From the IMG/VR virus record IMGVR_UViG_3300023184_000025, positions 1 to 64,000 of that record: a DNA stretch of 64,000 bases; one strand, written 5' to 3'. Positions 5,623 to 26,843 of the stretch are shown piece after piece (within the stretch, counting starts at the first letter, position 1; every line of letters begins with the position of its first letter). A program made the translations under genes and the position numbers. Under the pieces are notes generated by a model. The model had not been told where the DNA came from, made no database searches, and worked only from the letters and a program-made list of their open reading frames with translations.

Positions 5623-5636
5623 ACCTTATATTTAGC

Positions 5637-6065
5637 CTACATGTTCTCTAAGAGCCAAAGGTATGATGGTGCTTGAAATTTAAAAATTACTTGACCGTTA
5701 CAACCAATTGCACCATAGAAAGAGTCAACAATGTTGTCTTGAGTCCCATTAAAATTATGGTGATATGCGGCTTGTTGGAATACTATCTTGCTAACGTCAA
5801 TGTCTTCAAGTTTAAAATCAGTAACAGTAACCAATACATCTTTTATAATATTTCCAAATTCATCTACTTTGGTATGATCAATGGTTTTGCCAGACATTTT
5901 AATAGTCAATGTGTATTCCTGATCAGTGTCATCAAATTCGTGGTTAATAGTTATAGGATCAACGCTGGGTTTTCCTTGAAAAATATTAACATTGTTTAAA
6001 TGAATTGACACGTCAAGCTCGGGTTCTGTAGCAGAAACCCGCAGGCTTAATGTTGAATTGTCCAT
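5637..6065 (-). CDS. Hypothetical protein (beta-rich)
   Basis: 142-aa ORF translationally coupled to the upstream gene. Confidence 0.6.
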   Translation of the reverse strand: MDNSTLSLRVSATEPELDVSIHLNNVNIFQGKPSVDPITINHEFDDTDQEYTLTIKMSGKTIDHTKVDEFGNIIKDVLVTVTDFKLEDIDVSKIVFQQAAYHHNFNGTQDNIVDSFYGAIGCNGQVIFKFQAPSYLWLLENM

Positions 6066-6619: not shown

Positions 6620-7354
6620 TTATGCTTTTATTAAGGTTACAGTTTTTCTGACTGTGCTTGGACTCACAAGACTAAGCATACTTACAAAAGATTCGTGATC
6701 GTATTCTACAAAAAAGTTTCCATACAAATAACAGTACTCGTCTTTTTTTACCCAATGTGTAAGTGCAGGCCCTAATCTTATTTGCCCTTCGTAGTTTTTT
6801 AAGAAATTAACCAAATAACTTTTTTGTTGTTTGGTTATTTTTCTATCTTTAAAATATAAACGATAAGAATGCTTTGGATTTTTTAATCTAATGGTACCTT
6901 TTGCAAACGCTACATTAATCTGATATACGTGTACATTTTTTATAAACGGTAATTTGGATAATTCTTCTATATATTTTTTATTGTTGGTGTATAGATATCC
7001 ATAGCCGCCTGACTGTATTATTAGTCTTTTGGTATCCGATTCTAACGTATAAAAATTATAGAACGACAATAAATTTTCTTCTACTTCATCACCAATGGGC
7101 AATCCCTCTGATCGGCTGTGCCAGTTTCCTCCCCAATTAACGTGTCTTAGGTGATCTTTGAATTTTTTTCGTTGAGACAAGTTCCAAGAAATCATCTTAC
7201 GATCTTTATCAGGATCATTTTTTAAATTTCTTAGACAAGGTAATTCTTGAAGATAGAAAACAGCCCTATACTCAAATTGATCAAAGTATAGCTGGCTTGA
7301 ATTAACTACTTCAAACTCTGGGTTTGAATTGATCAAGGATAATGTATCCATCAC
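6620..7354 (-). CDS. Hypothetical protein
   Basis: 244-aa ORF downstream of clpA. Confidence 0.6.
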   Translation of the reverse strand: MMDTLSLINSNPEFEVVNSSQLYFDQFEYRAVFYLQELPCLRNLKNDPDKDRKMISWNLSQRKKFKDHLRHVNWGGNWHSRSEGLPIGDEVEENLLSFYNFYTLESDTKRLIIQSGGYGYLYTNNKKYIEELSKLPFIKNVHVYQINVAFAKGTIRLKNPKHSYRLYFKDRKITKQQKSYLVNFLKNYEGQIRLGPALTHWVKKDEYCYLYGNFFVEYDHESFVSMLSLVSPSTVRKTVTLIKA

Positions 7355-9602
7355 TATTAACTGTAGGTTGAGTTGTTTCTTGCACAGGCACGTTTATGTT
7401 TGTTTCAAAGTAAATTTCTCCATCCTTTACAACAACATTTATATTGCAATCAGCAAGACGGTCAAATAAAATTTTTCTACTTAACGGAACACGAATCAGC
7501 TCGTCAATTTTTCTACCCAATGGTCGAGCTCCCATTAATGGATCATATCCACGGTCAGCCAATAGTTCAACTGCTGGCTCTGTTAAAGTTAGTTTAATAT
7601 TTTTATTAACCAAACTAGTTTTTAGTTCATCGACAAATTTGATAACAATTTTCTTAATTGCTAGTTTATCAAGCTTGCCAAATTTACAGACTGCATCCAA
7701 GCGATTTCGTAATTCAGGTTTAAAAAACTCTTTAAAGGCACGATCATCTTCGCCAGTTTTTGCCATGTCTCCAAAGCCAATGTTATTACGTTCACTGTCA
7801 GCACTACCAAGATTACTGGTCATAATAACAATGGTATTTTTACAATCAACTGTTTTTCCGTTGCTACCTGTAATTTTTCCTTCATCAAGCAATTGTAGAA
7901 AGATGTTACTTACATCAGGGTGCGCTTTTTCTACTTCGTCAAATAATAATATCGAAAATGGGTGCTTGCTCAAGTCGCTAATTAATTTGCCACCACCAAG
8001 ATTGCCATCCTCAAACCCAACATAGCCTGGCGGTGCACCAATCAAACTTGATACAGTATGCTTTTCCTGATACTCACTCATGTCGTACTTGAGTAATGTC
8101 ATATCAAGGTATTCAGCCAACATACGTGCCAATTCAGTTTTACCTGTACCAGTTGGCCCCAAGAACAAGAAACTAGACATTGGTTTTCTTGTTGTATTAA
8201 TGCCAGCAAAACTTACATAGATACGATCTAGTACTGTGTCAATGACCTGGTCTTGACCGTATACTCGTTGTTTGATATTACTTTCAAGATCAATAATACG
8301 TGTGCTCTGTTGATTGGCCAAGTGATCCATTGGTACACCGGCAACACGACTGACCTGTTGCATAATTAACTCTTTTGTGACTGTTAATGTACCTGCATCC
8401 TTGACCCTTTCACGAGCACAGGCAGCATCAATTAAATCAATGCTTTTGTCGGGATTCTTTTTGTCATGAATGTAACGACCACTTAGTTCAACTGCTGATA
8501 TAATAGCATCTGTGTCAATCATCACATTGTGAAACTTTTCCAGTCGCGGACTGAGTCCAATAAGAATTTTTTCTGTAGTTTCTTTGTTTGGTTCGTCGAT
8601 ACTGAGTCGATAGAATCTACGCATCAACGCACGATCTTTTTCAAAGCTTTCGTAGTACTCTTCCCAGGTTGTGCTGGCCACAACTTTAAGTACACCTTTG
8701 GTAATTGCTGGCTTGATCATATTAGCAAAATCAAGCTGGCTTTGTCCTGAACTGCCTGCTCCACGCATGGTGTGTGCTTCGTCAATAAACAGCACACAAT
8801 TCTTTTTACTTTCTAATGCATCAATTACCTGTTTGAGTTTTTCTTCAAACTCGCCGCGATACTTTGATCCAGCTAGTAAACTTCCGATTTCCAAACTCCA
8901 CACTTCATGATCTCTAAGGAAACTAGGAACATCATTGTTGACAATTCGCTGTGCCAGGCCTTCAATGATGGCAGTTTTGCCCACACCCGGATCTCCTACC
9001 ATTAGCACGTTGGCTTTAAATCTACGTGCTAACACAGTGACCATTTCTTCAATGTCTTTTTCTCTGCCAATCACTGGTTCAAGTTGATCTTTTTTTGCCT
9101 GATCGGTAATGTTGGTACAATGTTCTTCAAGTATCTCTGTGGCCTGTTGATTGGTGATTTTAACATCGCCGTGTTTGTAATTCTGTTCCCAAAATTTTAC
9201 AAACTCTGCTTTTGTTACACCATATTTGAGCAAGAAGTAATGTGCATGACTATTGTTTTCACTCATAAGAGCAAGATAAAGATCAATGGTGGTAATTACT
9301 CGTCGACCGGTGAACAATACTTGTGTCAGCGCACGATTAAAAATACGTTCTAGTGCATTTGTTTTTCGAGGTTGTATATCTTCTTTACTACTGCGTAAGT
9401 TTGTCAAACTTTCTAGATACGCATTAAGTTCTGACTCAAGCATGTCTATTTCTAAACCAAAATTAATTAATACAGTTCTAAATGGATTGTATTGTAGCAA
9501 CGACAGTAGCAAATGCTCAGTTAACACATACTCGTGTTTTTTGTCTCGAGCAATTCTAACTGCCGCATCAATAATTTGTTCAATTTCGGGATTATTTTGC
9601 AT
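7311..9602 (-). CDS. clpA: ClpA-like Hsp100 AAA+ unfoldase
   Basis: Clp N-domain (EHLLL), two Walker A motifs (GDPGVGKT, GPTGTGKT), LFIDEAH, DMSEYQEKH, LIGAPPGYVG and a ClpP-docking IGF loop; no ClpB coiled-coil M-domain. Confidence 0.92.
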   Translation of the reverse strand: MQNNPEIEQIIDAAVRIARDKKHEYVLTEHLLLSLLQYNPFRTVLINFGLEIDMLESELNAYLESLTNLRSSKEDIQPRKTNALERIFNRALTQVLFTGRRVITTIDLYLALMSENNSHAHYFLLKYGVTKAEFVKFWEQNYKHGDVKITNQQATEILEEHCTNITDQAKKDQLEPVIGREKDIEEMVTVLARRFKANVLMVGDPGVGKTAIIEGLAQRIVNNDVPSFLRDHEVWSLEIGSLLAGSKYRGEFEEKLKQVIDALESKKNCVLFIDEAHTMRGAGSSGQSQLDFANMIKPAITKGVLKVVASTTWEEYYESFEKDRALMRRFYRLSIDEPNKETTEKILIGLSPRLEKFHNVMIDTDAIISAVELSGRYIHDKKNPDKSIDLIDAACARERVKDAGTLTVTKELIMQQVSRVAGVPMDHLANQQSTRIIDLESNIKQRVYGQDQVIDTVLDRIYVSFAGINTTRKPMSSFLFLGPTGTGKTELARMLAEYLDMTLLKYDMSEYQEKHTVSSLIGAPPGYVGFEDGNLGGGKLISDLSKHPFSILLFDEVEKAHPDVSNIFLQLLDEGKITGSNGKTVDCKNTIVIMTSNLGSADSERNNIGFGDMAKTGEDDRAFKEFFKPELRNRLDAVCKFGKLDKLAIKKIVIKFVDELKTSLVNKNIKLTLTEPAVELLADRGYDPLMGARPLGRKIDELIRVPLSRKILFDRLADCNINVVVKDGEIYFETNINVPVQETTQPTVNSDGYIILDQFKPRV

Positions 9603-9678: not shown

Positions 9679-10470
9679 TTATTTATTTGACTGATCTTTA
9701 AGGATATCTATTATTTCATCTGGAATATGGTCGGGCATGACTGCATTTAATTTAATCATGATATCTCCTGTTGTTCCATTGTTTGAACGCAGACCTAGTC
9801 CTCGTAATCTCAATGTGGTGTTTGGATTAGTCATCGGAGGAACAGTCACTGACATTTCTCTACCTCTAAGGTCTTGTACTACTGCGTCAGTACCGATAAT
9901 TAATTCCCAAAAAGATGCATTGTGTTTGGCATAAAGATCATTGCCTTGTCTTGACCAAATTGGGTGTGGATGGATTCTAAACTGCACAACAAGATCGGAG
10001 TTACCCGGTCCGATACCCGGATAACGTATGTTAGATCCGTCTTCAACGCCTTCGGGTATGTGTATTTCAATTGCTGACGTGCCTAAATTTGATGTCACTG
10101 CTACAGTTCTTGCGCCACCAGTGACTACGTCGTCGAGCTTGATCCATAATGTCATACGTTGAAACGACTGTCTCGGTTGATTAACATTCATCCTAGCGCC
10201 AAACATATTAAAAATAGCATCCATATCAAATGGGTCCTGGCCGGCACCCGGACCACTAGATCTAAAATTAAAATTAGTCTGTGGAGTATCGTATTGTGCT
10301 CGTTTTTCTGGATCACTTAGTGTTCTGTATGCTTCTTCTACTTCTTGAAACTTTTTTGTATCACCACCCTTATCTGGATGGTGCTGGCTGGCCAGCTTAC
10401 GATAAGCTTTTTTAATTTCATCAGCGGCAGCAGTTTTGGGCACACCTAATGTGGCATAGTGATCTGTCAT
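9679..10470 (-). CDS. DnaJ class B (CbpA-like) co-chaperone
   Basis: J-domain with HPD motif, G/F-rich region and DnaJ C-terminal domain; no zinc finger. Confidence 0.9.
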   Translation of the reverse strand: MTDHYATLGVPKTAAADEIKKAYRKLASQHHPDKGGDTKKFQEVEEAYRTLSDPEKRAQYDTPQTNFNFRSSGPGAGQDPFDMDAIFNMFGARMNVNQPRQSFQRMTLWIKLDDVVTGGARTVAVTSNLGTSAIEIHIPEGVEDGSNIRYPGIGPGNSDLVVQFRIHPHPIWSRQGNDLYAKHNASFWELIIGTDAVVQDLRGREMSVTVPPMTNPNTTLRLRGLGLRSNNGTTGDIMIKLNAVMPDHIPDEIIDILKDQSNK

Positions 10471-11471: not shown

Positions 11472-12416
11472 TTAATTTGGATTAGCAAAATAAATGGTAG
11501 CACCCTGTGGCTGTACAGCACGGGCATTGCCATCAGGGAATACTGTTTTAAATTGTGCTACTTGTGCCACTGACAACTGGATGGGTTGTCTAAACAGTAC
11601 CCAAGAAACAATTTGTGGATATGCTTGTTGAGTCAATTGACGCTGTGGATTGCCCCACCATGGACGACTGTTGGCAGGGTTAGTGGTGGCAACACAGGTG
11701 CTATTGGCACCCAGCGTACCAATTGAAATTGGTGCAGTTAATCCGCCACTGTATCTATAACTTGGTGCTGTGTTGAAGTTGGCCATGCCCATCATTGATG
11801 CAATGTTGAAACTGACAGTCTGACCAGAATTTGCACCGCTGGCGTTGGCAGCCGGAATTGCATTAAACACACTGGCCCAGGCAGCATTTGGTGTATTACC
11901 ATTGCCCACCATGCGTTGACCTAATACCAACAAACTGTCAGAGTTACACAATCCATAAGGACCAGTAAAATCTGCCAATTTGAAATAAACAAAGTGTACT
12001 TCTAAATCAGTAACTGAATTATTAATCCAATGCTCTGCTGGTCCATGAAAGTGAAACTCTAGCAAGCAGTATTGAGCACCCCCAAATACAATACCAGGAG
12101 CACATGAACCTGCATTGGGATTGTTGAGTTTGTAGGTACCCCAACGTGTGTTGGCAATAGGATATGCGTTTGCACCAGCAGATGCTGTGGGTAAAGTACA
12201 CACATCACCTGCGCCACTGTTGCAAAATGCGGAATTTAGTGTGTTTTGAGTTGCAAAAGTAAATGTGGCATTTAACCCACTGTAACTGGTAAACTGGGCT
12301 GGGCTACCTTGTGGAGTAGTTGCTGTGATGTTTACTGGTGTTTGGCTCTGAGAATTGACCTGCAATGAAGTTAATCCAAGAATAAAAATTGTAGTTAATA
12401 TTCTAATATATTTCAT
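11472..12416 (-). CDS. Secreted alpha-carbonic anhydrase-like protein
   Basis: Signal peptide; EFHFH..AEH and LEVHFV (three Zn-binding His); YRYSGGLTAP, VSWVLFRQPIQLS and NARAVQP motifs. Confidence 0.82.
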   Translation of the reverse strand: MKYIRILTTIFILGLTSLQVNSQSQTPVNITATTPQGSPAQFTSYSGLNATFTFATQNTLNSAFCNSGAGDVCTLPTASAGANAYPIANTRWGTYKLNNPNAGSCAPGIVFGGAQYCLLEFHFHGPAEHWINNSVTDLEVHFVYFKLADFTGPYGLCNSDSLLVLGQRMVGNGNTPNAAWASVFNAIPAANASGANSGQTVSFNIASMMGMANFNTAPSYRYSGGLTAPISIGTLGANSTCVATTNPANSRPWWGNPQRQLTQQAYPQIVSWVLFRQPIQLSVAQVAQFKTVFPDGNARAVQPQGATIYFANPN

Positions 12417-14993: not shown

Positions 14994-16127
14994 ATGAATG
15001 TTTTGATTCTCACTCCCGACCGTGTTGGCAGTACTCTACTACAACGATTAATCACTGTTTACATGAATGCACACGCATTTGATCAGCCTGTGATTAATTT
15101 ACATGAATTAACCAACGGCATTATGAAGTATTATAGCCCTACATTCAATCAAGAAGTGCTGGGCAAGTTTGAAGACCGACAAAAATGGGGGTATTATCAA
15201 ACTCTTGAAGAAATCACAGAACTTCTTGGCTCAGTTGAACATTATAAAACCACAAGACTAGCACATTATCATATTAAAAAACGACAGGACACTATTGCTA
15301 GTCAAGTTCCTTTTTACGAATACCTAAATCAAAATTTCTACATCATCAGTGCCCAACGAGACAATTTGTTTGAGCATGGACTCAGTTGGTGTATATCAAA
15401 CGAGTCAAAGAAATTAAATGTGTTTAGCCATCAAGAAAAAGTTGATGCATTTTCTAACATTTATAAAAATAAAATCAACGTTGATCCATTGGCGCTGATA
15501 AAATACCTTGACCAGTATGTTGAGTATCTGGCCTGGGTAGACAATCACTTTGACGTTAACTCGTATTTTAAATACGACAAAGATATGTCAAGACTTGAAG
15601 AGTACATACTTGGGCTGTCTATCTTTAGCCAGCAACCAAACAAAAGGTCCTGGAAAGACATCTTTGAACTAGAGTTTGCTGACTGGAACAAGTGTCATTA
15701 CCTAATCAGCGATCTAAGCGGAATCAGCACACAACTACCATCTGTTGACCATCCAAAGTTGACCTATGACGGAAAAGAATCCAACTTTGATAATGTGCAA
15801 CTACAAAGCCTGGCAAGAACAGAGATACCAAAGTCTTTGTCTGTGGTCGATCAACGGTTCTTAATAAAAAATGGCCCAGGGTATCAAAAAGCACACAATG
15901 CTATCAACCAGCTGGTAGAAAACAAAGTACTAGTTACGCCTGTGCCAATAAAACTGCAAACAATGCTGGAAAAGAAGTTATTAATTAATAATTTTTCTCA
16001 GTGTGTTGATGTGTATAACAAATGGTCAGAGTCAACAGGCATGGGTATTCAGTACTCTGATGAAGATATTGAGTTGTCAATAAAAGAAGAAATCAAAACC
16101 TGGCATGCTACTGCTTTGTTAAAGTAA
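14994..16127 (+). CDS. Sulfotransferase-like protein
   Basis: Likely start MNVLIL at 14994; TPDRVGSTLL resembles the 5'-PSB loop; R.NLFE..LSW resembles Stf0-type proteins. Confidence 0.5.
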   Translation: MNVLILTPDRVGSTLLQRLITVYMNAHAFDQPVINLHELTNGIMKYYSPTFNQEVLGKFEDRQKWGYYQTLEEITELLGSVEHYKTTRLAHYHIKKRQDTIASQVPFYEYLNQNFYIISAQRDNLFEHGLSWCISNESKKLNVFSHQEKVDAFSNIYKNKINVDPLALIKYLDQYVEYLAWVDNHFDVNSYFKYDKDMSRLEEYILGLSIFSQQPNKRSWKDIFELEFADWNKCHYLISDLSGISTQLPSVDHPKLTYDGKESNFDNVQLQSLARTEIPKSLSVVDQRFLIKNGPGYQKAHNAINQLVENKVLVTPVPIKLQTMLEKKLLINNFSQCVDVYNKWSESTGMGIQYSDEDIELSIKEEIKTWHATALLK

Positions 16128-16964
16128 CTCTGTAATTTTGTCCACAAAGGCAGAGGCAGTTTTGATATCATAATGATATCCGTCCCGGGCAAGATCTAAT
16201 TTTTCAAATTCAGGAATAAATTGTACATCTGGCAATTGCTCTTGAAACATTGATTTAAAACCAGACGCACAGAAATTTGGAATAACGCTGTGAATTATGT
16301 TGCAGTTGCCTTTGTTTTCTTCTATCTTGTTAATACAATCAATAGTTAATGCTATGTCTGCTTCATCTGTGCTTTTGACAAAATGCAGTTTTAAATCCTC
16401 GTCACTGACGTTTGTCCAAGATTGATCAGAATTTTTTAATTCTTCTTGAATAAAGTTGGGTAGGATATCTATATCAATGACGTTGGGACATGCGGGCCAG
16501 GAAGAATCTTTTACATTGTTATAAAAGTCCTTCCACTTTTTATTTAAGACTGTTTGATATTCATTTTCTCTACGATGCAGATAACTCCAGTGTATGATCA
16601 CCATTTCAGGAACAATTTCTTCAATAACTGTTAATGCTTTTCTTGTAATCCATGAATTACTACCACCGTCCATGCTTACATTTACAATTCTTTGTTTCAA
16701 CTGAGACTGTAGTATATTTGGCCAAGTGTGAGATAACGGGCTTCCAATGCCCACAGTAAAGCTATCACCAATGCACCAAATTGATCTTTTTAAATCTACT
16801 GGCCATTCAGAATCTCTGAAGCCTCGACTGTTGTGTTTGTAATCTACAACAAATTTATATCTAGTAAAATGATTTTTATCTAGTGCCAATTTAATGTTGT
16901 CAATGCCACTGTATTCCCAACGTTGATTTATCCTACTAGGTAAAATAAAATCAGGTAAAATCAC
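16119..16964 (-). CDS. SGNH/GDSL-hydrolase-like protein
   Basis: NSRGFR, CIGDSFTVG, NVSMDGGSN and RDGYH motifs. Confidence 0.65.
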   Translation of the reverse strand: MILPDFILPSRINQRWEYSGIDNIKLALDKNHFTRYKFVVDYKHNSRGFRDSEWPVDLKRSIWCIGDSFTVGIGSPLSHTWPNILQSQLKQRIVNVSMDGGSNSWITRKALTVIEEIVPEMVIIHWSYLHRRENEYQTVLNKKWKDFYNNVKDSSWPACPNVIDIDILPNFIQEELKNSDQSWTNVSDEDLKLHFVKSTDEADIALTIDCINKIEENKGNCNIIHSVIPNFCASGFKSMFQEQLPDVQFIPEFEKLDLARDGYHYDIKTASAFVDKITELL

Positions 16965-17830
16965 TCAAGACCCATGCTCTTACGAATTTTAGTTGCGCTG
17001 ATATCAGTTATTGATGAGTCAAATGACTCTTGTTCAATCTTATAGCCAACATCTCTACCATAGGTAATGTTTACAATGTTAGGTACAACCTGTATTTCAT
17101 ACTGTCCTTGATACAAAGTATCTAAGTCACGCCGTATGAAAGATTTGACTTTTTCAATTTCAAATGGGTTAGAGCCTTGCCACCCTTGACAGTCACGTAT
17201 TTGAATTACCACTTGCCCTGTCTTGGCAATAGCACGTTCAAACAAAGCTCGATGGCCAGCATGCCAGGGCTGCCAACGACCTAACATTTGTACAGTTTCT
17301 TTTTGCCAATCAAACACTGGCCGACGGCGATTTTCTAATATATGCGATCCAATAAACTCAGCCCATTTTTCAGCATTTTGTTCTGTAATTCTAAAGTCAT
17401 ATACTTCAGGCGGAACAAAGGCCTTGTTGGTATCTTCGTAACGGCCTTTATCAATGGTGTCAACCCAGATGGTCCAATCAGCTTTGAAATTGTTGCGCAT
17501 CTCTACCAATGGTGCAACAAAGTCACAGATCACATATTCTCCTGAGCACTCTATGGCAAATTGGAACATACGCAAACTTTGACGAATACGTCCAGCATCA
17601 GAAAAATCCCAATCGTTATACTTTTTACGAATGTCGTCGGCATTGAACCAATCAACACCTACATTCATAAAGTTGGGACCGGGTATTCCTTCATAATTCA
17701 TTACTCGACTGGGATTAATTTTCATTAAATCCCCATTGGTTTCAATATATTGTTTTAGTGCCTGTGCTAGATATGTTTTGCCTGCACCGGGCAAGCCCAT
17801 TATTAAAATACGTTGTGTGCTCATTTCCAT
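16961..17830 (-). CDS. Adenylylsulfate (APS) kinase-like domain fused to an HxGH nucleotidyltransferase domain
   Basis: GLPGAGKT, NADDIR, DFS..GR and DFVAP (CysC-like); C-terminal GRWQPWHAGH and ISATKIR. Confidence 0.78.
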   Translation of the reverse strand: MEMSTQRILIMGLPGAGKTYLAQALKQYIETNGDLMKINPSRVMNYEGIPGPNFMNVGVDWFNADDIRKKYNDWDFSDAGRIRQSLRMFQFAIECSGEYVICDFVAPLVEMRNNFKADWTIWVDTIDKGRYEDTNKAFVPPEVYDFRITEQNAEKWAEFIGSHILENRRRPVFDWQKETVQMLGRWQPWHAGHRALFERAIAKTGQVVIQIRDCQGWQGSNPFEIEKVKSFIRRDLDTLYQGQYEIQVVPNIVNITYGRDVGYKIEQESFDSSITDISATKIRKSMGLE

Positions 17831-18447
17831 TTCCTTGAAGAGTGTTTTGCTAAATCATCTGTGGGATGATAATCCACAGGTTGAAAGTATTTACGATTGG
17901 TATCATCTTGTAAAATTTTATTTAATACTGGGTCTTTAAAATCTATTGGGAATTCCAATTGCTTTGAAATTTGCCGCAAATAATTTTCTTTATAAAGATG
18001 CAGTAACTCATAACTTAGGAATACAGGACTCCATGTTGTTAATTTTTCATATTCTGCCAGTGCTATATCAAATGTGGGTTCGCCGCGCACACGAGTTTCT
18101 TGACAGTTTAATACATTACGATCTCTACCAATGATAGCAATCTTTACCTGTATGCCCAGACCCATTGCAGTGGCAGCAAAACGCACAATATTGGGCACAG
18201 TACGCTCACCGTTCATCATGTACGGTGTACTTACACTGGTCACAAAGTACTTGCATTCACCCCAGACAAACTCTTTTAATAGATCGGGGTTCTCCCAACA
18301 GGCCGCAAAGGGTTCTTGATCATGCCCTATCCAGTATTCGTGTAACAAGGCATGCCATGCATACACATCAGGGTGTAAGGCAAAGATCTTGCTCCATAAA
18401 TGATTTCCCGAACCCTGCGGTCCTGTCAGGATTAACAGAGTTTTCAT
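17821..18447 (-). CDS. Sulfotransferase-like P-loop protein
   Basis: ILTGPQGSGNHLW, IIGRD and LSYELL motifs. Confidence 0.5.
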   Translation of the reverse strand: MKTLLILTGPQGSGNHLWSKIFALHPDVYAWHALLHEYWIGHDQEPFAACWENPDLLKEFVWGECKYFVTSVSTPYMMNGERTVPNIVRFAATAMGLGIQVKIAIIGRDRNVLNCQETRVRGEPTFDIALAEYEKLTTWSPVFLSYELLHLYKENYLRQISKQLEFPIDFKDPVLNKILQDDTNRKYFQPVDYHPTDDLAKHSSRKWK

Positions 18448-19109
18448 CTTGGCAAATGAGCTAGAAATTCTTGTGTGCGATCAGTTATAACGCCTGTTAA
18501 TTGTAGCGTTACTCGGGGATGGTGCCCAGCATTAGCAGTCGAGTGTGGCATGTTGACCCAGTCAAATGTGCTGACATCACCGGAACGCCATTGATTCCAG
18601 TGATGGTTACCATATTCCCAGAACTGTCCAGGTTGCCAGTCTGTGAGCTGAACAAATATACGCATCACACGTGAGGGATCTTCAGGATTCCATTTCTGTA
18701 ATTTATCCATGTGTAGGTTCCAAACTTCCCCAGGCTGTTGCACATGAATACGTTCCATGCAGTCGTCTAGCGCAAACTGGTTGGAAATCTTTTTGAGCGA
18801 CTCGGGCATGTTCCAGTTTAAATGAGTGATAATTATTTTGGGGTCTACACCCACACGCTCTAGATCATATTCTTCTGCCACCAGGTCCTCACGTGGAGGC
18901 AACACACCCTCGCCTTTGTAACCACGTGTTTCCCAGGTGGCCGGCTTGGAATTGGCCACTATGTCAGCAACATCAGCTGACCACGTGGGTTCAATGTGTC
19001 CTAGATGTGCAATTACATCTTCAAAACGATCCAATCTTTTACTATCAAAATGGTATGTGCTGGTGCTTTTGGTGAAATCCCAACTGCTTTTAAATTCGTC
19101 TGTTATCAT
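18444..19109 (-). CDS. 2OG-Fe(II) oxygenase / cupin-fold protein
   Basis: Q.PG...LHMD...PHSTANAG..PR.TLQ (HxD...H, R). Confidence 0.72.
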   Translation of the reverse strand: MITDEFKSSWDFTKSTSTYHFDSKRLDRFEDVIAHLGHIEPTWSADVADIVANSKPATWETRGYKGEGVLPPREDLVAEEYDLERVGVDPKIIITHLNWNMPESLKKISNQFALDDCMERIHVQQPGEVWNLHMDKLQKWNPEDPSRVMRIFVQLTDWQPGQFWEYGNHHWNQWRSGDVSTFDWVNMPHSTANAGHHPRVTLQLTGVITDRTQEFLAHLPR

Positions 19110-19735
19110 ATTACTTTTACCCTTATGTCGTTTACTGCGTACTCTTGTGTGTATTCTGCGGGAGGTGCATCTATGCCCAGGGCCGCAGCCAGTCGTAGAT
19201 TGTTGTCCATTACAGGTTTATCATTGTATTTCCACCATGCGGCCAATATGTCTCGATTCTGGCTGCAAATGATCTGTGCCATGTTCTTTAAGTCTCGAAA
19301 ATACTCATGATAGTCAGGATATGTTATATCAAAATGCCCGCATTTGACCCACCAGCCCAGGCATGCGTCATCATTTCGATGCACAATTACAATGGGTGTT
19401 TCGGGGAATAGGTCGCGCAAATAGTCAATGTGATTTGAGAACACATGACTTTTGATAATACGCACACCCTTGGATTCTTTAAATTGAAATGGCTCAGCAA
19501 ATATTTCTTCTAGTTGCTGTCTGTTTAATGTTGTCAAATCCTCAGGCAGTGGGCTAATCATGCCTGGATCAAAGTACGCACCCAGATGCATGAGTTCCAT
19601 TTTGCCCGATGCATCATGATAGTAAGTCCATTCATCTCTATAGTCCGAACGATCAATGTCAGGACTATAGTAGATGTTTTTGACTACACTACTCCATTTT
19701 GAGCCCGGAGCACCGGCTACAAAGATATATTTCAT
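19106..19735 (-). CDS. Sulfotransferase-like protein
   Basis: FVAGAPGSKWSSV, IIKSH and IVIVHR motifs. Confidence 0.5.
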   Translation of the reverse strand: MKYIFVAGAPGSKWSSVVKNIYYSPDIDRSDYRDEWTYYHDASGKMELMHLGAYFDPGMISPLPEDLTTLNRQQLEEIFAEPFQFKESKGVRIIKSHVFSNHIDYLRDLFPETPIVIVHRNDDACLGWWVKCGHFDITYPDYHEYFRDLKNMAQIICSQNRDILAAWWKYNDKPVMDNNLRLAAALGIDAPPAEYTQEYAVNDIRVKVI

Positions 19736-20715
19736 TCTTTACTTAAATCAATTCGACTCAACACAGGAATAAATGCCGCACGTAATTCGTCCATTTGCTT
19801 TCGAAGCCCTGCAGGAGTCAACTCATCTTCAGCATAGAAAATAACATTGGCTTCTCTGTATTCTGCATATTCTCGGCTACGAACCGCGGCACTAAATTGT
19901 TGTTGATACCAGGCAACAATTTCTCGATCTGTCCCAGGAGGCAATTGTATACTCCAGGCCGCATATACATTGATGCCAGGGGCAATGGTGTTCAACAACG
20001 GGACACCAGGAAACTGTGCCATCTTTTGTGTGCCTGTGAACCCAATAGGCTTTACCTTGCCTGCGTCAACCAGAGATTTGGCCACTGTAATCGGTATAAT
20101 AGCAAATTCAGTACCTGTTTTGCCGTCATAACTTGCGGCACTGGTTACTGCTGGCATAGGGCCGTTGAACCTTACAGGATTAACCATGTCTCTATTGCCT
20201 TTTCCTTTGTCCATCAAGTATTCATATGCTGTGCGATGTGCTCCACCGCCGACTGCAATATTAATTGTTCTGCCTGACTGAATATACTTCACAAACTCCT
20301 GTGGAGTATTAACACCGCTCTTGACACCGGCCACTAATACCAATGGTGATTTGCCCATGGTCAACACATCAATGAATGAGTCGTAATTGTATTTCTTTAT
20401 ATTCTTTTCCCAAATATCATTTGTTACATAACTGCTCATGTGGCTGGGCAAGTTAATAGTATGGCCGTCATTGACTGCTTCCAAAAACCGGTTGTTGGCA
20501 ATAACCGAATCGGCTCCGGGAATGTTTTGCACAACATAAACAAATTTAGGGTTTTGTTTCTGTACAATATCCGCCAGTTTACGAAAGGCCATTTCATTGC
20601 CAGCACCGGGTGTGTTACCAATATACACAGTGACAGGCTTAGTTGGTTCCCATGCGTGAACTAGTGTGCTTGCAGTAACAAGCAATAAAGCAACAAACTT
20701 TTTTAATGTACTCAT
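19732..20715 (-). CDS. Bug/TctC tripartite tricarboxylate transporter substrate-binding protein
   Basis: Signal peptide (AHA-like) then WEPTKPVT...PGAG, V.N.PGA, DGHT and P.VP...PG...W....PPGT. Confidence 0.85.
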   Translation of the reverse strand: MSTLKKFVALLLVTASTLVHAWEPTKPVTVYIGNTPGAGNEMAFRKLADIVQKQNPKFVYVVQNIPGADSVIANNRFLEAVNDGHTINLPSHMSSYVTNDIWEKNIKKYNYDSFIDVLTMGKSPLVLVAGVKSGVNTPQEFVKYIQSGRTINIAVGGGAHRTAYEYLMDKGKGNRDMVNPVRFNGPMPAVTSAASYDGKTGTEFAIIPITVAKSLVDAGKVKPIGFTGTQKMAQFPGVPLLNTIAPGINVYAAWSIQLPPGTDREIVAWYQQQFSAAVRSREYAEYREANVIFYAEDELTPAGLRKQMDELRAAFIPVLSRIDLSKE

Positions 20716-20808: not shown

Positions 20809-21534
20809 ATGAATACCAAAATTTTTGACTTATTAACTAAAAATTTGCAGGCCGCCTTTAATTTACCCAAGTATCAGAGAATTCTTGACACCATTGGGCC
20901 GGACACAGAAGTTGACAAACTTCCTTGGACTCCGGCTAGATATCGTAAATTCAAAGACGCTGTGGATGCTGAATTGCAGTTGTCCTGCGATTATGTTGGT
21001 ACATTAAAGAACATAACAGCTGATCTCAGCGAACGTTATATCAATCACTTTTTTGGCGAAATCTGGAAACCCAGAACTGGCGACTATGACTACACAGGCT
21101 GGCAGTTGGCTGAAGAAATTAATCAACTCAATCCACATAGTGTACTAGATGTTGGTTGTGGATATCATCCTTTTAAAGGTCGTATTAACAACGTTGTTGG
21201 TATTGATCCCTATAACAACTGCGCCGATTACATGGTTGACATTCTGGACTATGCTGGTAGTCACGATGTTATTATTGCTTTGGGATCAATTAACTTTAAT
21301 AGTCGTGATGAGATTGAATCACGCTTTGCTAAGTGTGTTGATCTATTAGAATCAGGCGGCAAATTTTATCTACGAGCAAACCCTGGAATCACACACAAAA
21401 CAGGACCATATGTTGACATATTCCCCTGGAGTTTTGAAATAGTCAAAGAGTTTGCTGACAAGTACAAGTTAAAGTTGTTAGAGTTTAAAAAAGACAACAA
21501 CGATAGACTGTACTTTGTGTATTCTAAACCTTGA
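20809..21534 (+). CDS. Class I SAM-dependent methyltransferase with N-terminal ACP-like domain
   Basis: VLDVGCG, VVGIDP and DVIIALGSINF motifs; the N-terminal ~75 aa resemble an acyl carrier protein pattern. Confidence 0.72.
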   Translation: MNTKIFDLLTKNLQAAFNLPKYQRILDTIGPDTEVDKLPWTPARYRKFKDAVDAELQLSCDYVGTLKNITADLSERYINHFFGEIWKPRTGDYDYTGWQLAEEINQLNPHSVLDVGCGYHPFKGRINNVVGIDPYNNCADYMVDILDYAGSHDVIIALGSINFNSRDEIESRFAKCVDLLESGGKFYLRANPGITHKTGPYVDIFPWSFEIVKEFADKYKLKLLEFKKDNNDRLYFVYSKP

Positions 21535-22165
21535 TATCTTTGATTAAATCAAAGGCAGCCAAATGAGCTTGTTCTAAAGGGTGTAGTGTGTTGCTAATAG
21601 GATATCCTTTGACCTGGCTCCACTCTAAGAAATTCTTATCTTCAAACTTGGTCATGTAAGGACGTACATAGTTTTGTAGGTCCATAATTCCTGGCGGTGC
21701 ATGATATTTACTGTCAAAGGTTAAGTCGTCCATGTAGGTCATTATAAATGGACAGTTCTTTTCTTTAAGTGTGTCTATGGCCAAGCGCATACACATTAGA
21801 GTATTGAGTTTATCTCTGTACTCAGAGTGTAGGTTTTTAAAATAAAAAGTAGAATTGGTATCTTTTTCAATAGGGCGTAGTGTTAGCCAATCATCTTTGT
21901 GATCAGTGTGATCAAATCGATCAATCCAGGTCCATCCGATCACAAACAAGCTGTGTTCATTGCAGCCTGCTTGATTTAGCACACGGTCAAGTATGCTGAG
22001 ATTGCCAATGCCTGGGCGGGCATAACAAATATATTGGTAATCTAAATGATTAGCAAGATGTGCGGGCCAGGTTAGTTTACTGGGTGTGGCCCAAAGAGCA
22101 CCATTTCCGTCGTCAGATAAATCTGTTCCAAAAATGAAACTGCACCCAAAGCTTTTGAGTTTCAT
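21524..22165 (-). CDS. SGNH-hydrolase-like protein
   Basis: FGCSFIFG, TWPAHLA, PGIGN and HPLEQAH motifs. Confidence 0.65.
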   Translation of the reverse strand: MKLKSFGCSFIFGTDLSDDGNGALWATPSKLTWPAHLANHLDYQYICYARPGIGNLSILDRVLNQAGCNEHSLFVIGWTWIDRFDHTDHKDDWLTLRPIEKDTNSTFYFKNLHSEYRDKLNTLMCMRLAIDTLKEKNCPFIMTYMDDLTFDSKYHAPPGIMDLQNYVRPYMTKFEDKNFLEWSQVKGYPISNTLHPLEQAHLAAFDLIKDIKV

Positions 22166-23436: not shown

Positions 23437-24189
23437 ATGTTCAAAGGAGAACCGAACTTGAGTAGAAACCGAGGCGCCAAGGCGCAAAAACGCATCCAAA
23501 CAGTTACTGAAAATACCATTCAATTTAACTTACAACCCAACTTAAAACAACGAGCAATAGAACTTATACCCAAAACTAAAAACCAAGAAAACCTTATATT
23601 AAATCTACTCGACGTAGATCAGCACATCATAGTAACAGCAGGGCCAGCAGGAACTGGTAAAACTTATCTAGCCATGCTGGCAGCGGTCAAAGCATTTAGA
23701 AGTGGAGAAGCCAAGCGTATCGTTCTAACTCGTCCCGCCATTGGCGTGGAGGATGAACAACATGGCTTTTTACCCGGCAATCTAGTGGCCAAAATGGAAC
23801 CCTGGACAAGACCCCTGCTTGATGTACTGCGTGAATACTACCGACCCACTGAGATCACTGCAATGATTGAAGATGGTACTATTGAAATTTCACCCTTAGC
23901 CTACATGCGTGGACGCACGTTCAAGCATTCCTGGATTATTGCAGATGAAATGCAAAACGCTACTCCTGCACAGATGAAAATGCTATTAAGCCGTATAGGC
24001 ACAGGCAGTCGTATTGTGGTCACCGGAGATGTGGAACAAGCAGATCGACAACAGGATAACAATGGGTTGTTGGATCTATGCTTAAAATTAGAAGCAAGAC
24101 CCATCAACGGAATGGCTGTGTGCAGAATGACCGGCCGAGATATACAAAGACACCCAATAATTGGAGAGGTACTACAATTATATCAATAA
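23437..24189 (+). CDS. phoH: PhoH-family ATPase
   Basis: GPAGTGKT, LTRPA, GFLPG, YMRGRTF, DEMQN and VTGD..Q.D motifs; alternative TTG start at 23458. Confidence 0.93.
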   Translation: MFKGEPNLSRNRGAKAQKRIQTVTENTIQFNLQPNLKQRAIELIPKTKNQENLILNLLDVDQHIIVTAGPAGTGKTYLAMLAAVKAFRSGEAKRIVLTRPAIGVEDEQHGFLPGNLVAKMEPWTRPLLDVLREYYRPTEITAMIEDGTIEISPLAYMRGRTFKHSWIIADEMQNATPAQMKMLLSRIGTGSRIVVTGDVEQADRQQDNNGLLDLCLKLEARPINGMAVCRMTGRDIQRHPIIGEVLQLYQ

Positions 24190-24225: not shown

Positions 24226-25212
24226 ATGATTAAAATAGACCAAATCCGTGCATTACACATTGAACTTAGTTCTCGTTGCAATGCACGATGTCCCATGTGT
24301 ATGCGTAACTACCGGGGCGTGGATTTTAATGGAGGGTATCCGTTGACTGAGTTGTCACTCAGTGATATTCAACACATATTCCCTTCACACTTTTTAAAAC
24401 AAATTAACCGTATTAACTTTAACGGAAATCTTGGAGATTTTAGTCTGGCCAGCGATGCGTTGGAAATAGTTGACTACTTTTTATCTAATAGTACTGCTCA
24501 AATACAGATTGAAACAAATGGTAGTACACGTTCTACTGCCTGGTGGCAGAAATTAAACAACCATCGAATTAAAGTATTATTTGCATTAGACGGACTCAAA
24601 GACACACACAATCTGTACCGTCAGAACACTGATTGGGAAAAAATAATAGATAATGCTGTGGCGTTAATCCAATCAGGCGGAAATGCTGTTTGGAAATTTA
24701 TTCCGTTTAAACATAACCAACATCAATTTAATAGTTGTCAGACACTGAGCCGTCAGTTGGGATTTTCAGATTTTACAGTACGAGATCAGGGACGTAATCA
24801 AGGACCGGTATTTACAAGAAACGGCGAGTTTAGTCATTGGCTTGGCGATGCACAATCTGACATACCCGATTCTAATGCTTTAATTGAAGATCATTTGACC
24901 TGGTTTGATTATAAAAAGAAAATTCCCTGGGTTAATGATAATGCACAAATAGATTGTGGCCATATAAAACAAAAAGAGATTTATATAGCTGCCGACGGAT
25001 CTGTGTATCCTTGTTGTTATCTGGGATATTTTCCAAAGACAATGCATCAACCAGGAAACAGTCAATTTAAAGATCTTGTCAAAGAAAACAATGCATTAGA
25101 ATACAGTCTAGAGCATTGCATTGATTGGTTTGACCAGGTAGAAAAAACCTGGACTTTACCCAGTGTGGCACAGGGTAAGTTGTATACGTGTGTTAGTGCC
25201 TGCGGACACTAA
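24226..25212 (+). CDS. Radical SAM protein with SPASM/twitch-like C-terminus
   Basis: CNARCPMC, ETNG, FALDG and ADGSVYPCC...C..ACG motifs. Confidence 0.88.
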   Translation: MIKIDQIRALHIELSSRCNARCPMCMRNYRGVDFNGGYPLTELSLSDIQHIFPSHFLKQINRINFNGNLGDFSLASDALEIVDYFLSNSTAQIQIETNGSTRSTAWWQKLNNHRIKVLFALDGLKDTHNLYRQNTDWEKIIDNAVALIQSGGNAVWKFIPFKHNQHQFNSCQTLSRQLGFSDFTVRDQGRNQGPVFTRNGEFSHWLGDAQSDIPDSNALIEDHLTWFDYKKKIPWVNDNAQIDCGHIKQKEIYIAADGSVYPCCYLGYFPKTMHQPGNSQFKDLVKENNALEYSLEHCIDWFDQVEKTWTLPSVAQGKLYTCVSACGH

Positions 25213-25843: not shown

Positions 25844-26843
25844 ATCCGTTTTCTTTAAATAATCGTGTAATGGTCAATATAATATTAAGTCAATGTAAAC
25901 GAGCAGTGATTGTATTGTATAGATAATCAGCCCAAATCTCATGACCAAGTTCAGTTGGATGTTTTGTGGCTTTTTGGTAATTTAACTTGCTTTTTTCTAA
26001 CCATGAGATTGCCAATTCACTGCTGGCATATAGACTCATAAATTGGAATTTATATTTTTTATACAGGTCAATATCTTTGAGTAGCTTGTGCAATGGTACC
26101 AGCGCAATGCCAGAAAGAAATCTAACATCTGTAGGATAATCTTGATTACTCTGATACTCAGCCAAACAATCGACCCAGATTTTTTTAGTTAGATAATCTT
26201 CAAGCACTGAAATATTACTATCAAAACTGTAGGTAAAGTTTCTAGAAATTACAAATTGAACCAAACTATGTTGCTTGCATGTTTGAGCAAGATTCTCAAA
26301 CATATTTTTTTCGTATTCACACAAATATTCTTCAAGACTGGGTTGTTCTTCAGGAACCCAAACTCTGTCCCAATATGATTCTCGGCAGTTTTCAGTTAGA
26401 GTAATTGTCACAATAATCTTTTTATATTTTGTCTCAACTATAGGTAAAAGACTTTTTACCCAATCACAAAACTCTATATTGGCACCACCACACTTGGCAA
26501 GATTGATAAAATCAGCATCTAGTTTTTTTGCCAGCAATGCACCATATATTTTGTTGACTCTGTTGGGATGGTCATGCTTACCAGCTTCAGCATCAATATC
26601 AAGAAGACTATCTCCCCAGGTCCAGCTGTCCCCAGCTGTGATCAACAAAGTATCTTTGTTGTGTAGTGATTCATGATACCACGATCTTGCTGGAGATGAA
26701 AGATTGTTGTGTATTTCAGCTAATAAATTAAAATAACCCATTGATCTAAGTTGTTAGGGCAACAGCGTTGCCGATTGTTTGTTCATTGGCTTTTCTTCTT
26801 TTTTAATTTCGTACCCGTTTTCTTTAAGTAATCGTGTAATGGT
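25835..26843. repeat. 40-bp imperfect direct repeat (25835-25874 / 26804-26843) bracketing an SGNH gene
   Basis: taatttcatatccgttttctttaaataatcgtgtaatggt vs taatttcgtacccgttttctttaagtaatcgtgtaatggt (37/40 identical). Confidence 0.85.
25890..26741 (-). CDS. SGNH-hydrolase-like protein
   Basis: AGDSWTWG, NLAKCGGAN and HPTELGH motifs. Confidence 0.68.
   Translation of the reverse strand: MGYFNLLAEIHNNLSSPARSWYHESLHNKDTLLITAGDSWTWGDSLLDIDAEAGKHDHPNRVNKIYGALLAKKLDADFINLAKCGGANIEFCDWVKSLLPIVETKYKKIIVTITLTENCRESYWDRVWVPEEQPSLEEYLCEYEKNMFENLAQTCKQHSLVQFVISRNFTYSFDSNISVLEDYLTKKIWVDCLAEYQSNQDYPTDVRFLSGIALVPLHKLLKDIDLYKKYKFQFMSLYASSELAISWLEKSKLNYQKATKHPTELGHEIWADYLYNTITARLH

Follow-up and report, generated by a model that had tools for sequence, protein, structure and literature searches.

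Metazoan PAPS synthases (PAPSS1/2) are bifunctional proteins of about 620 aa in which an APS kinase at the N terminus and an ATP sulfurylase of the Sat type (Pfam PF01747) at the C terminus are joined on one chain. Sat is a member of the HUP/Rossmann-like nucleotidyltransferase superfamily and has a catalytic core of about 200 aa with QxRNPxHxxH, GRDHAG, and ISGTxxR motifs, whereas the alternative ATP sulfurylase, CysDN, catalyzes the same reaction with an unrelated PP-loop ATP pyrophosphatase plus a GTPase and is sometimes fused to CysC (CysNC/NodQ). An HxGH nucleotidyltransferase fused to a P-loop kinase is also found in NadR (NMNAT plus ribosylnicotinamide kinase), and the NadM/archaeal NMN adenylyltransferases (NMNATs) share the HxGH signature. 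Papers on SAR11 bacteria from 2016 to 2025 describe an incomplete pathway in which AprBA makes APS from sulfite but no ATP sulfurylase is known in most members of the group (10.1101/2022.09.23.509140; PMC5069961; PMC12636525).

Here we describe a gene of a freshwater jumbo phage, located in a stretch of 64,000 nucleotides (positions 1 to 64,000 of IMG/VR record IMGVR_UViG_3300023184_000025, referred to as the window), that encodes a fusion of a small APS-kinase-family domain with a very small NMNAT-derived nucleotidyltransferase (NT) domain. The predicted domain order and overall reaction resemble those of metazoan PAPS synthase, and HxGH and ISxTxxR motifs are present in the second half, but this half is not a PF01747 domain, has no PUA-like domain, and has no detectable global sequence homology with its counterpart, whereas the kinase lacks most of the lid and the N-terminal extension; the resemblance is therefore one of architecture and not of homology. 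Compared with NadR, the domain order is opposite, the kinase is of a different family, and there is no HTH domain; CysDN has no similarity to the NT domain.

The Gene and Its Neighbors

The features of the locus are listed in Table 1. The open reading frame proposed in the earlier note as a possible miniature PAPS synthase, for which no strand was given, is real and lies on the minus strand. The second ATG is the likelier start, as it forms an ATGA overlap with the stop of the upstream gene, lies 6-7 nt after an AAGGAA Shine-Dalgarno-like site, and gives the length of the 100%-identical proteins in databases. The protein is far from isolated: 7,917 homologs were found among the 8,000 candidates scored in a word search and 1,987 in a representative library clustered at 50% identity, and a PHROG match was obtained at E 9e-46. 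Megablast of 10 kb of the window against cultured phages gave no match, and no RNA run was found to contain the stretch.

Table 1. Positions of the fusion gene, its domains and motifs, and the adjacent genes within the window
Position	Strand	Feature	Basis
16961..17830	-	CDS of the kinase-nucleotidyltransferase fusion; 289 aa from the first ATG, likely start at 17824 giving 287 aa; stop TGA at 16961-16963	Open reading frame; 100%-identical 287-aa proteins
17321..17824	-	N-terminal compact APS-kinase-family domain (residues about 3-170)	Pfam PF01583; profile against PDB; Foldseek
17774..17797	-	Walker A P-loop GLPGAGKT (residues 12-19); K18 invariant in the family	Family alignment
17651..17734	-	28-residue insert after the P-loop helix (residues 33-60), present only in the window's own clade and absent from most homologs	Alignment; PHROG and representative hits start at about residue 58-62
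17495..17647	-	APS-kinase substrate-site block (residues 62-112): FNADDIR, DFS, GRIRQ, DFVAP, aligned to LDGDNIR, GFS, DREEN, SFISP of human PAPSS1; D65, R68, F76, R81, Q84, F104, and P107 invariant or nearly so	Residue-by-residue HMMER alignment to 2pey/2ofw
16964..17305	-	C-terminal mini HxGH nucleotidyltransferase domain (residues 176-289), derived from NadM/archaeal NMNAT; proposed ATP sulfurylase	Profile and fold searches; function inferred from genomic context
17252..17281	-	GRWQPWHAGH (residues 184-193), the HxGH ATP-binding signature; G, R, Q, and both H invariant	Family alignment
17042..17062	-	YGRDVGY (residues 257-263), family-specific motif absent from NMNATs; Y, G, R, V, G, Y invariant or nearly so, the D not (SAR11 has G)	Family alignment
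16982..17002	-	ISATKIR (residues 277-283), the ISxTxxR motif shared by NMNAT, PPAT, and Sat; R283 invariant	Family alignment
17821..18447	-	Upstream gene, sulfotransferase-like (208 aa; N-terminal GPQGSGNHLW loop); its stop overlaps the start of the fusion gene	ESM Atlas; no Pfam hit
18444..19109	-	Gene of unknown function (221 aa) in the same overlapping gene string	
19106..19735	-	Sulfotransferase-like gene (209 aa); conserved in 8 related phage loci	Pfam Sulfotransfer_3 E 1.3e-5, 26 bits against cut-off 27
19732..20715	-	TctC-family periplasmic solute-binding protein (327 aa), first gene of the overlapping minus-strand string	Pfam PF03401, 66.8 bits
16119..16964	-	Downstream gene, weakly SGNH/GDSL-hydrolase-like (281 aa); its GTG start overlaps the stop of the fusion gene (GTGA)	
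14994..16127	+	Convergent sulfotransferase-like gene (about 377 aa from the internal Met; PDRVGSTLL loop)	ESM Atlas

The Kinase Domain

The N-terminal domain scores 23.3 bits with Pfam APS_kinase (PF01583) against a cut-off of 21.1, and homologs score 32-61 bits, but the score with TIGR00455 is only 17 bits against 138.7, indicating a divergent member of the family and not an equivalog. A family profile hits PDB APS kinases at E 4e-17 to 1e-9, whereas other P-loop kinases appear only at about 1e-5, and the top Foldseek hits are all APS kinases. The domain is smaller than CysC (about 135-170 aa against about 175-200 aa) and has a shortened lid. The P-loop lysine is retained, as are the equivalents of human PAPSS1 Asp89, Arg92, Phe101, Arg106, Asn109 (here Gln), and the F-x-x-P of SFISP. 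However, it should be noted that the first Asp of the DGDN motif (Asp87 of PAPSS1) is Asn63 here, as is usual in the family although some homologs have Asp, and that mutation of both Asp residues to Ala abolishes the activity of human APSK (PMC11697783).

The replacement of this Asp by Asn63, together with the precedent of the Sat-CysC fusions of Penicillium chrysogenum and Thiobacillus denitrificans (PDB 1m8p and 3cr8), in which one domain is probably noncatalytic, raises the possibility that only one domain is active, the NT domain being a nucleotide-binding or regulatory appendage of an ordinary APS kinase or the kinase-like domain being an allosteric APS/PAPS sensor, as in fungal ATP sulfurylase. 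This is unlikely, as the catalytic signatures of both domains are invariant across very divergent homologs and the NT domain exists as a standalone gene in the apr operon of genomes in which no APS kinase was found, so that it must have a function of its own.

The Nucleotidyltransferase Domain

The C-terminal domain of about 114 aa is predicted to fold confidently on its own (pLDDT 93.6), and its HxGH and ISxTxxR motifs are invariant across 49 diverse sequences. The earlier note had correctly recognized a CysC-like kinase fused to an HxGH domain of about 115 aa, but its comparison of this domain with Sat requires correction, as the domain is not Sat-like in sequence. No PF01747 hit was obtained, no ATP sulfurylase appears in a search of the family profile against the PDB at E <= 10, and hhalign against Sat aligns only 16 columns, at the ISxTxxR motif, with 12% probability. 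The order of motifs (P-x-H-x-x-H, G-R, IS(G/A)TxxR) is analogous to that of Sat, but their spacing differs (66 and 19 residues against 90 and 66-72) and there is no QxRN sulfate-binding motif as such. The resemblance of YGRDVGY to the GRD motif of Sat is not in register, and the Asp is not conserved, SAR11 proteins having YGRGVGY. At the level of fold, VIA-align superposes the domain on Thermus thermophilus Sat (1v47_B) at Z 8.9 and rmsd 3.0 over 111 residues and on other Sat chains at Z 5.8-6.4, but NMNAT, PPAT, and NadM rank higher (Z about 10.5); since all of these superpose, fold searches do not discriminate between them, and the similarity to Sat is at the superfamily level only.

The domain is instead a truncated derivative of a NadM-type NMNAT. 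The GRFQPFHxGH and NPF motifs and the first three strands align with the archaeal enzyme (1f9a) at E 8e-12, but only the first 77 or so profile positions align, and about 60 residues of an NMNAT are lacking: about 33 between β3 and the ISxTxxR region and the C-terminal 35 of MJ NMNAT, corresponding to residues 76-108 and 134-168 of 1f9a. Only three regular strands are identified by DSSP. The scores with NCBIfam NMNAT models are 24-26 bits against cut-offs of 127-397; for the NadM/archaeal models (TIGR01527, NF002243) they are 23.8 bits against 181.2 and 25.9 against 127, with only residues 182-250 aligned. The family has gained the invariant YGRxVGY motif and Arg212.

In view of this ancestry, the protein might be a NadR-like NAD salvage enzyme, in which the P-loop domain phosphorylates nicotinamide riboside and the NT domain is a genuine, if small, NMNAT that helps the phage to restore NAD+. 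NadR structures (1lw7 and 8x7f) are among the fold matches, some JGI records name homologs "nicotinamide riboside kinase," and in Xylella phages, including phage Bacata where the two genes overlap at the start of the module, the module follows a gene for NADAR, a family linked to NAD/ADP-ribose metabolism. However, the kinase is specifically APS-kinase-like and keeps the phosphosulfate-binding arginines, the segments noted above are missing from the NT domain, the phage has no NAMPT, and the operon linkage described below is with aprMBA and not with NAD genes, making this interpretation improbable. By analogy with PPAT and dephospho-CoA kinase, the protein might also make an unknown 3'-phospho-adenylylated, cofactor-like molecule, the NT domain adenylylating a phosphorylated or anionic small molecule and the kinase phosphorylating the 3'-OH of the product. 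Adenylyltransferase plus 3'-kinase is the logic of both CoA and PAPS synthesis, PPATs are among the best fold matches, automatic JGI names include "phosphopantetheine adenylyltransferase," and in one homolog (P0261) the kinase is fused to a sugar-type NTP_transferase. This also appears doubtful, because the substrate pocket residues of the kinase match those that hold the small phosphosulfate group and the apr linkage points to APS itself. In all five carrier genomes examined, CoaE and two or more strong canonical CTP_transf_like (NadD/CoaD-like) genes are present, indicating that the module does not fill a missing CoaD/CoaE function; action on NMN or phosphopantetheine, which the earlier note had named as the outcome that would contradict it, is made less likely by these data but is not excluded.

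Genomic Association with APS Metabolism

The proposal in the earlier note that the small domain adenylates sulfate is supported by several independent genomic results. The two domains are fused in both orders, kinase-NT in the window and NT-kinase in homolog P0205, and are encoded by two adjacent genes in SAR11; in homolog P0225 the NT domain is fused to a canonical CysC (212 bits), although the genomic context of the latter was uninformative because the contigs are short. In 121 Pelagibacteraceae genomes, 59 have both the NT domain and aprA, 12 have the NT domain only, 1 has aprA only, and 49 have neither (odds ratio 241, p 4e-21). In 24 genomes, the NT domain lies on the same strand 1.4-4 kb upstream of aprM-aprB-aprA, the place normally held by sat, in three architectures (NT alone, kinase plus NT, and fused), and it is found in the apr operon of genomes in which no APS kinase was found. 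Of the 60 genomes with aprA, 55 lack Sat. It should be recognized that these statistics are not corrected for phylogeny and that the 1.4-kb arrangement probably represents one clade. Also, aprA was not found in the non-SAR11 carriers or in the phage, and none of the 80 best cellular loci has aprA within 8 kb; the apr adjacency is therefore confined to particular SAR11 subclades. The NT domain and Sat are not mutually exclusive, as 3 SAR11 genomes have NT, aprA, and Sat, and a class-level sample had too few NT carriers (3 of 151) for a test. Two carriers (G004 and G005) have CysD/CysH-type genes, and G005 a CysNC, alongside the module, so that it can be redundant, whereas SAR11 Ia genomes have a second, canonical-like CysC, which leaves the role of the mini-kinase there unclear.

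These observations suggest, with somewhat better than even likelihood and in the absence of any biochemical data, that the gene encodes a two-domain enzyme for sulfate activation. The NT domain is envisaged to have evolved from a NadM-type NMNAT by loss of the NMN-binding insert and the C-terminal helices and is inferred to catalyze the reaction ATP + sulfate <-> APS + PPi, the same attack on the α-phosphate as in NMNAT but with sulfate as the nucleophile; the compact APS kinase would then phosphorylate the 3'-OH of APS to give PAPS, pulling the unfavorable first step forward. In SAR11, the unfused domain would run in reverse next to AprMBA (sulfite + AMP -> APS; APS + PPi -> ATP + sulfate), filling the gap left by the missing sat. 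It is about as likely as not that the mini HxGH domain founds a third, previously unrecognized family of ATP sulfurylases alongside Sat and CysDN and, when fused to the compact kinase, forms the smallest known PAPS synthase, spread widely by freshwater and marine phages to feed viral sulfotransferases. If so, this would be a case of non-orthologous displacement in which a cofactor-biosynthesis enzyme was pared down to accept sulfate, and it would complete AprBA-dependent sulfite oxidation in the ocean's most abundant bacteria, with a bearing on how much organosulfur (taurine, DMSP-derived, and sulfonate sulfur) they return to sulfate with ATP gained by substrate-level phosphorylation.

The genomic evidence links the NT domain to APS but does not specify the acceptor. 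The domain could therefore act on APS as an APS:phosphate adenylyltransferase (APS + Pi -> ADP + sulfate), or could transfer the adenylyl group of APS or ATP to another small acceptor, in which case the fusion protein would not be a complete PAPS synthase and would depend on host APS; sulfur oxidizers appear to use either ATP sulfurylase or APAT after AprBA. This is considered unlikely, although less so than the other alternatives, because the conserved HxGH and ISxTxxR motifs are the PPi/triphosphate-handling motifs of this superfamily and an APS-consuming activity fused to an APS kinase would compete for the same substrate. In addition, the fused form is enriched in SAR11 genomes without aprA (8/12 against 3/59), and some carriers (for example, G003) lack CysD and Sat altogether, so that no other source of APS is evident there.

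Phage Context

The phage record has no Sat, CysD, or CysH, and the fused protein would, in this interpretation, supply PAPS to phage-encoded sulfotransferases in the same gene island. The window has three sulfotransferase-like genes, of which one scores just below the Pfam cut-off and the other two lie nearest to sulfotransferase clusters in the ESM Atlas, at 0.94-0.96. The earlier note's suggestion that the protein feeds these neighbors requires a second correction, as they are conserved in only 5-8 of 62 informative related phage loci; however, a different sulfotransferase family is a common neighbor, and 32 of 80 related phage loci carry a sulfotransferase-type open reading frame within 3.5 kb, including a bona fide one at 55.7 bits. 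If the inference holds, phages carry a complete sulfate-activation module together with sulfotransferases, which implies virus-directed sulfation of some host or virion molecule, and so small a module could be a useful part for PAPS regeneration in biocatalytic sulfation. Another phage has the module next to MetK, which speaks against this interpretation. In public databases, the family is at present unnamed or automatically named "phosphopantetheine adenylyltransferase," "adenylylsulfate kinase," or "kinase."

Gene Structure and Genomic Setting

The gene for the fused kinase and nucleotidyltransferase (NT) encodes 289 aa from the first ATG, but the second ATG, at 17824, is the likelier start, because it overlaps the stop codon of the upstream gene as ATGA, follows an AAGGAA site at optimal spacing, and yields a product of 287 aa, the length of the identical proteins in the large collection searched. 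The stop codon overlaps a GTG start of the next ORF (GTGA), and the five minus-strand ORFs from 20715 to 16119 overlap by 4-10 nt, forming one tightly packed gene string. The window is part of a 262-kb IMG/VR virus record that is about 76% complete; an identical copy lies on a 345-kb viral contig, and the DNA recurs in freshwater and lake metagenomes from several studies. T4-type neck, clamp-loader, and PhoH genes mark it as a large T4-like myovirus. The coordinates of the features discussed here are collected in the table.

Table. Coordinates of the module and of associated features in the window, in SAR11 genomes and loci, and in other phages
Sequence	Position	Strand	Feature
Window	16961-17830	-	Kinase-NT module ORF
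Window	17651-17734	-	Kinase insert of 28 residues (residues 33-60)
Window	19732-20715	-	TctC-family periplasmic solute-binding protein with N-terminal signal-like sequence
Window	16119-16964	-	ORF with GDSL/SGNH-hydrolase-like N-terminal motif
Window	21524-22165	-	ORF with GDSL/SGNH-hydrolase-like N-terminal motif
Window	25890-26741	-	ORF with GDSL/SGNH-hydrolase-like N-terminal motif
Window	23437-24189	+	PhoH (223 bits)
Window	24226-25212	+	Radical SAM/SPASM-domain protein
Window	7311-9602	-	Full-length ClpB-type AAA+ disaggregase (763 aa)
Window	9679-10470	-	DnaJ co-chaperone (J domain plus C-terminal domain)
Window	11472-12416	-	ORF of 314 aa with eukaryotic-type (alpha) carbonic anhydrase domain (57.9 bits)
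SAR11 locus L087	4520-5191		TenA/THI-4/PQQC-family gene
SAR11 locus L090	3209-3880		TenA/THI-4/PQQC-family gene
SAR11 locus L088	5301-6026		TenA/THI-4/PQQC-family gene
SAR11 genome G001, contig C1	140639-141061		Second APS-kinase-like gene
SAR11 genome G002, contig C2	22609-23049		Second APS-kinase-like gene
Xylella phage Bacata (L001)	5562-6005		NADAR-domain gene (94.8 bits)
Phage contig L106	1540-3154		Module followed by other genes (see text)

Kinase Domain

Residues about 3-170 pass the Pfam APS_kinase model, and a profile built from 45 diverse homologs hits only APS kinases at the top of the PDB list (E 4e-17 to 1e-9), with unrelated P-loop proteins starting at about 1e-5. A Foldseek search with the full AF2 model (pLDDT 92.6) likewise returns APS kinases first. 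In the HMMER alignment to human PAPSS1, FNADDIR is matched to LDGDNIR, DFS to GFS, GRIRQ to DREEN, and DFVAP to SFISP, and Lys18, Asp65, Arg68, Phe76, Arg81, Gln84, Phe104, and Pro107 are invariant or nearly so; on the accepted structural view of APS kinases, these positions are the catalytic Asp, the two arginines that hold the phosphosulfate, and an adenine-stacking Phe. However, it should be noted that there are three differences from canonical CysC: the first Asp of the DGDN motif, a catalytic-motif residue, is replaced by Asn (Asn63), although some homologs keep DGD; the lid is shortened; and the window's close clade alone carries the insert that follows the P-loop helix, which is modeled as two short helices plus coil.

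Nucleotidyltransferase Domain

Residues 176-289 are predicted to fold confidently alone (pLDDT 93.6). By sequence, the domain descends from NadM/archaeal NMNATs (1f9a at E 8e-12, plus 2qjt, 1ej2, and weak NCBIfam NMNAT hits), which are its nearest sequence relatives, but only the first 77 or so positions align, and residues 76-108 and 134-168 of MJ NMNAT have no counterpart. By fold, NMNAT, PPAT, and NadM tie at Z 10.5 and are followed by the ATP sulfurylase of T. thermophilus at Z 8.9. There is no global sequence homology to Sat, since hhalign against 13 alphaproteobacterial Sat cores aligns only the ISxTxxR motif. The family-specific invariants are GRxQPxHxGH, Arg212, YGRxVGY, and ISxTxxR.

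Domain Arrangements and Distribution

Among 1,987 representative homologs, the two domains occur in four forms: fused as kinase-NT (the window and most phages), fused as NT-kinase (library protein P0205), fused as NT plus a textbook CysC scoring 212 bits (library protein P0225), and encoded as adjacent genes. These arrangements indicate that the two domains belong together, and to APS metabolism. Other fusions of the parts in the same library are kinase plus a sugar-type NTP_transferase (PF00483; P0261), a DUF4118 membrane domain plus kinase plus NT (P0166), and mini-NT plus a chorismate synthase fragment (P0264), the last being possibly an assembly or gene-call artifact. A scan of GTDB species genomes found the mini-NT in at least 529 stretches, mostly from Pelagibacteraceae and other Alphaproteobacteria, and the kinase is adjacent to the NT in 72 of the 80 loci kept.

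Association with aprA in SAR11

The same 121 Pelagibacteraceae genomes were searched for the mini-NT and for aprA. The mini-NT is present in 71 genomes and aprA in 60; both occur in 59, the NT only in 12, aprA only in 1 (on a short contig), and neither in 49. This corresponds to an OR of 241 (p 4e-21), but it should be recognized that the association statistics are uncorrected for phylogeny. In 24 genomes, the NT lies 1.4-4 kb upstream of aprA on the same strand. Three architectures were read out. In SAR11 genome G088, the order is PLP enzyme, MFS, TenA-like, NT, AprM-like membrane protein (at least 4 TM segments), AprB, AprA, a 116-aa ORF, and TauE/SafE; in G007 the same cluster has the mini-kinase and NT before the TenA-like gene; and in G012 a fused kinase-NT is in that position. 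The TenA/THI-4/PQQC-family (heme-oxygenase-like) gene is conserved between or beside the mini-NT and aprM in all three architectures. If the classical gene order of sat-aprMBA clusters is taken as the reference, the NT occupies the slot of sat.

Sat is present in only 5 of the 121 genomes, so that 55 of the 60 aprA-positive genomes lack it, and 54 of those 55 have the mini-NT, although Sat and the mini-NT coexist in a few genomes. Published papers state that SAR11 lacks sat and cysDN and that these pathways are "incomplete" (PMC5069961; 10.1101/2022.09.23.509140; PMC12636525). In G088 no APS kinase of any type was found, and in a further genome, G091, there was only a P-loop-level hit, whereas positive controls scored 178-195 bits; the NT therefore has a function of its own next to AprBA. 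The NT domain of the phage is 52% identical (E 1e-38) to this apr-operon NT. Fused forms are enriched in SAR11 genomes without aprA (8 of 12 as against 3 of 59, p 6e-6), as expected if fusion helps when APS must be made from sulfate rather than from sulfite. The role of the mini-kinase is unclear in SAR11 Ia genomes, which carry in addition a second, more canonical APS-kinase-like gene (83-121 bits on PF01583).

Coexistence with Other Pathways

The five carrier genomes examined all have CoaE and at least two strong canonical CTP_transf_like genes, so the module does not replace PPAT, DPCK, or NaMNAT. None of the five has Sat. The complete Acetobacteraceae chromosome G003 also has no CysD/CysH-type gene and no AprA, so that there the module is the only recognizable sulfate-activation candidate. 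However, carrier genomes G004 and G005 do have CysD/CysH, and G005 a CysNC, so the module can coexist with the classical route.

Inferred Mechanism

In the absence of an assay, the mechanism can only be inferred. The NT domain would bind ATP through HxGH and ISxTxxR, as in NMNAT, but, having lost the NMN-binding parts, it would use sulfate as the nucleophile on the α-phosphate, probably held by the family-specific arginines Arg212 and/or Arg259, to give APS and PPi. The fused APS kinase would convert APS to PAPS and so pull the unfavorable equilibrium, whereas in SAR11 the unfused enzyme would run in the favorable direction, from APS and PPi to ATP and sulfate. Public names for the family are "kinase," "adenylylsulfate kinase," "phosphopantetheine adenylyltransferase," "nicotinamide riboside kinase," or none at all, and no paper proposing it as a sulfurylase was found in full-text searches. 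The reaction and the bifunctional logic are known, and what appears to be new is that the sulfurylase step would be carried by an unrecognized enzyme family.

Phage Context

The phage record has no Sat, NAMPT, CysD, or CysH. In the window, three sulfotransferase-like genes lie within 3 kb of the module, but among 80 related viral loci these particular neighbors recur in only 5-8. A different, bona fide sulfotransferase (PF13469 at 55.7 bits, PF00685 at 47.8 bits) lies about 2.2 kb upstream in 24 loci and, in all, 32 of the 80 loci (27 of the 62 with enough flank) have a sulfotransferase-type ORF within 3.5 kb. In these related loci the module sits in a variable island just upstream of the T4-type neck protein genes, which also recurrently holds RCC1-repeat proteins, QueD/PTPS, and FkbM- and CmcI-type methyltransferases. 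In Xylella phage Bacata the module follows a NADAR gene, which overlaps the start of the module's homolog in Salvovirus phages, and a 192-aa ORF before it has a sub-threshold Sulfotransfer_4 hit. In a more distant phage (contig L106) the module is followed by a 126-aa ORF, then S-adenosylmethionine synthetase (MetK), a phosphoribosyltransferase and, further downstream, ThyX, which suggests a general nucleotide/cofactor AMG island rather than a sulfation cassette.

In the window, the TctC-family protein heads the gene string that contains the sulfotransferase-like genes and the module, and is conserved in 8 related phage loci. The three GDSL/SGNH-hydrolase-like ORFs, which have weak Pfam/NCBIfam hits (DUF6071), are scattered through the same island. 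The PhoH gene is followed directly by that of the radical SAM/SPASM-domain protein. Elsewhere in the window, the ClpB-type disaggregase is encoded next to the DnaJ co-chaperone, and the carbonic anhydrase domain is unusual cargo for a phage.
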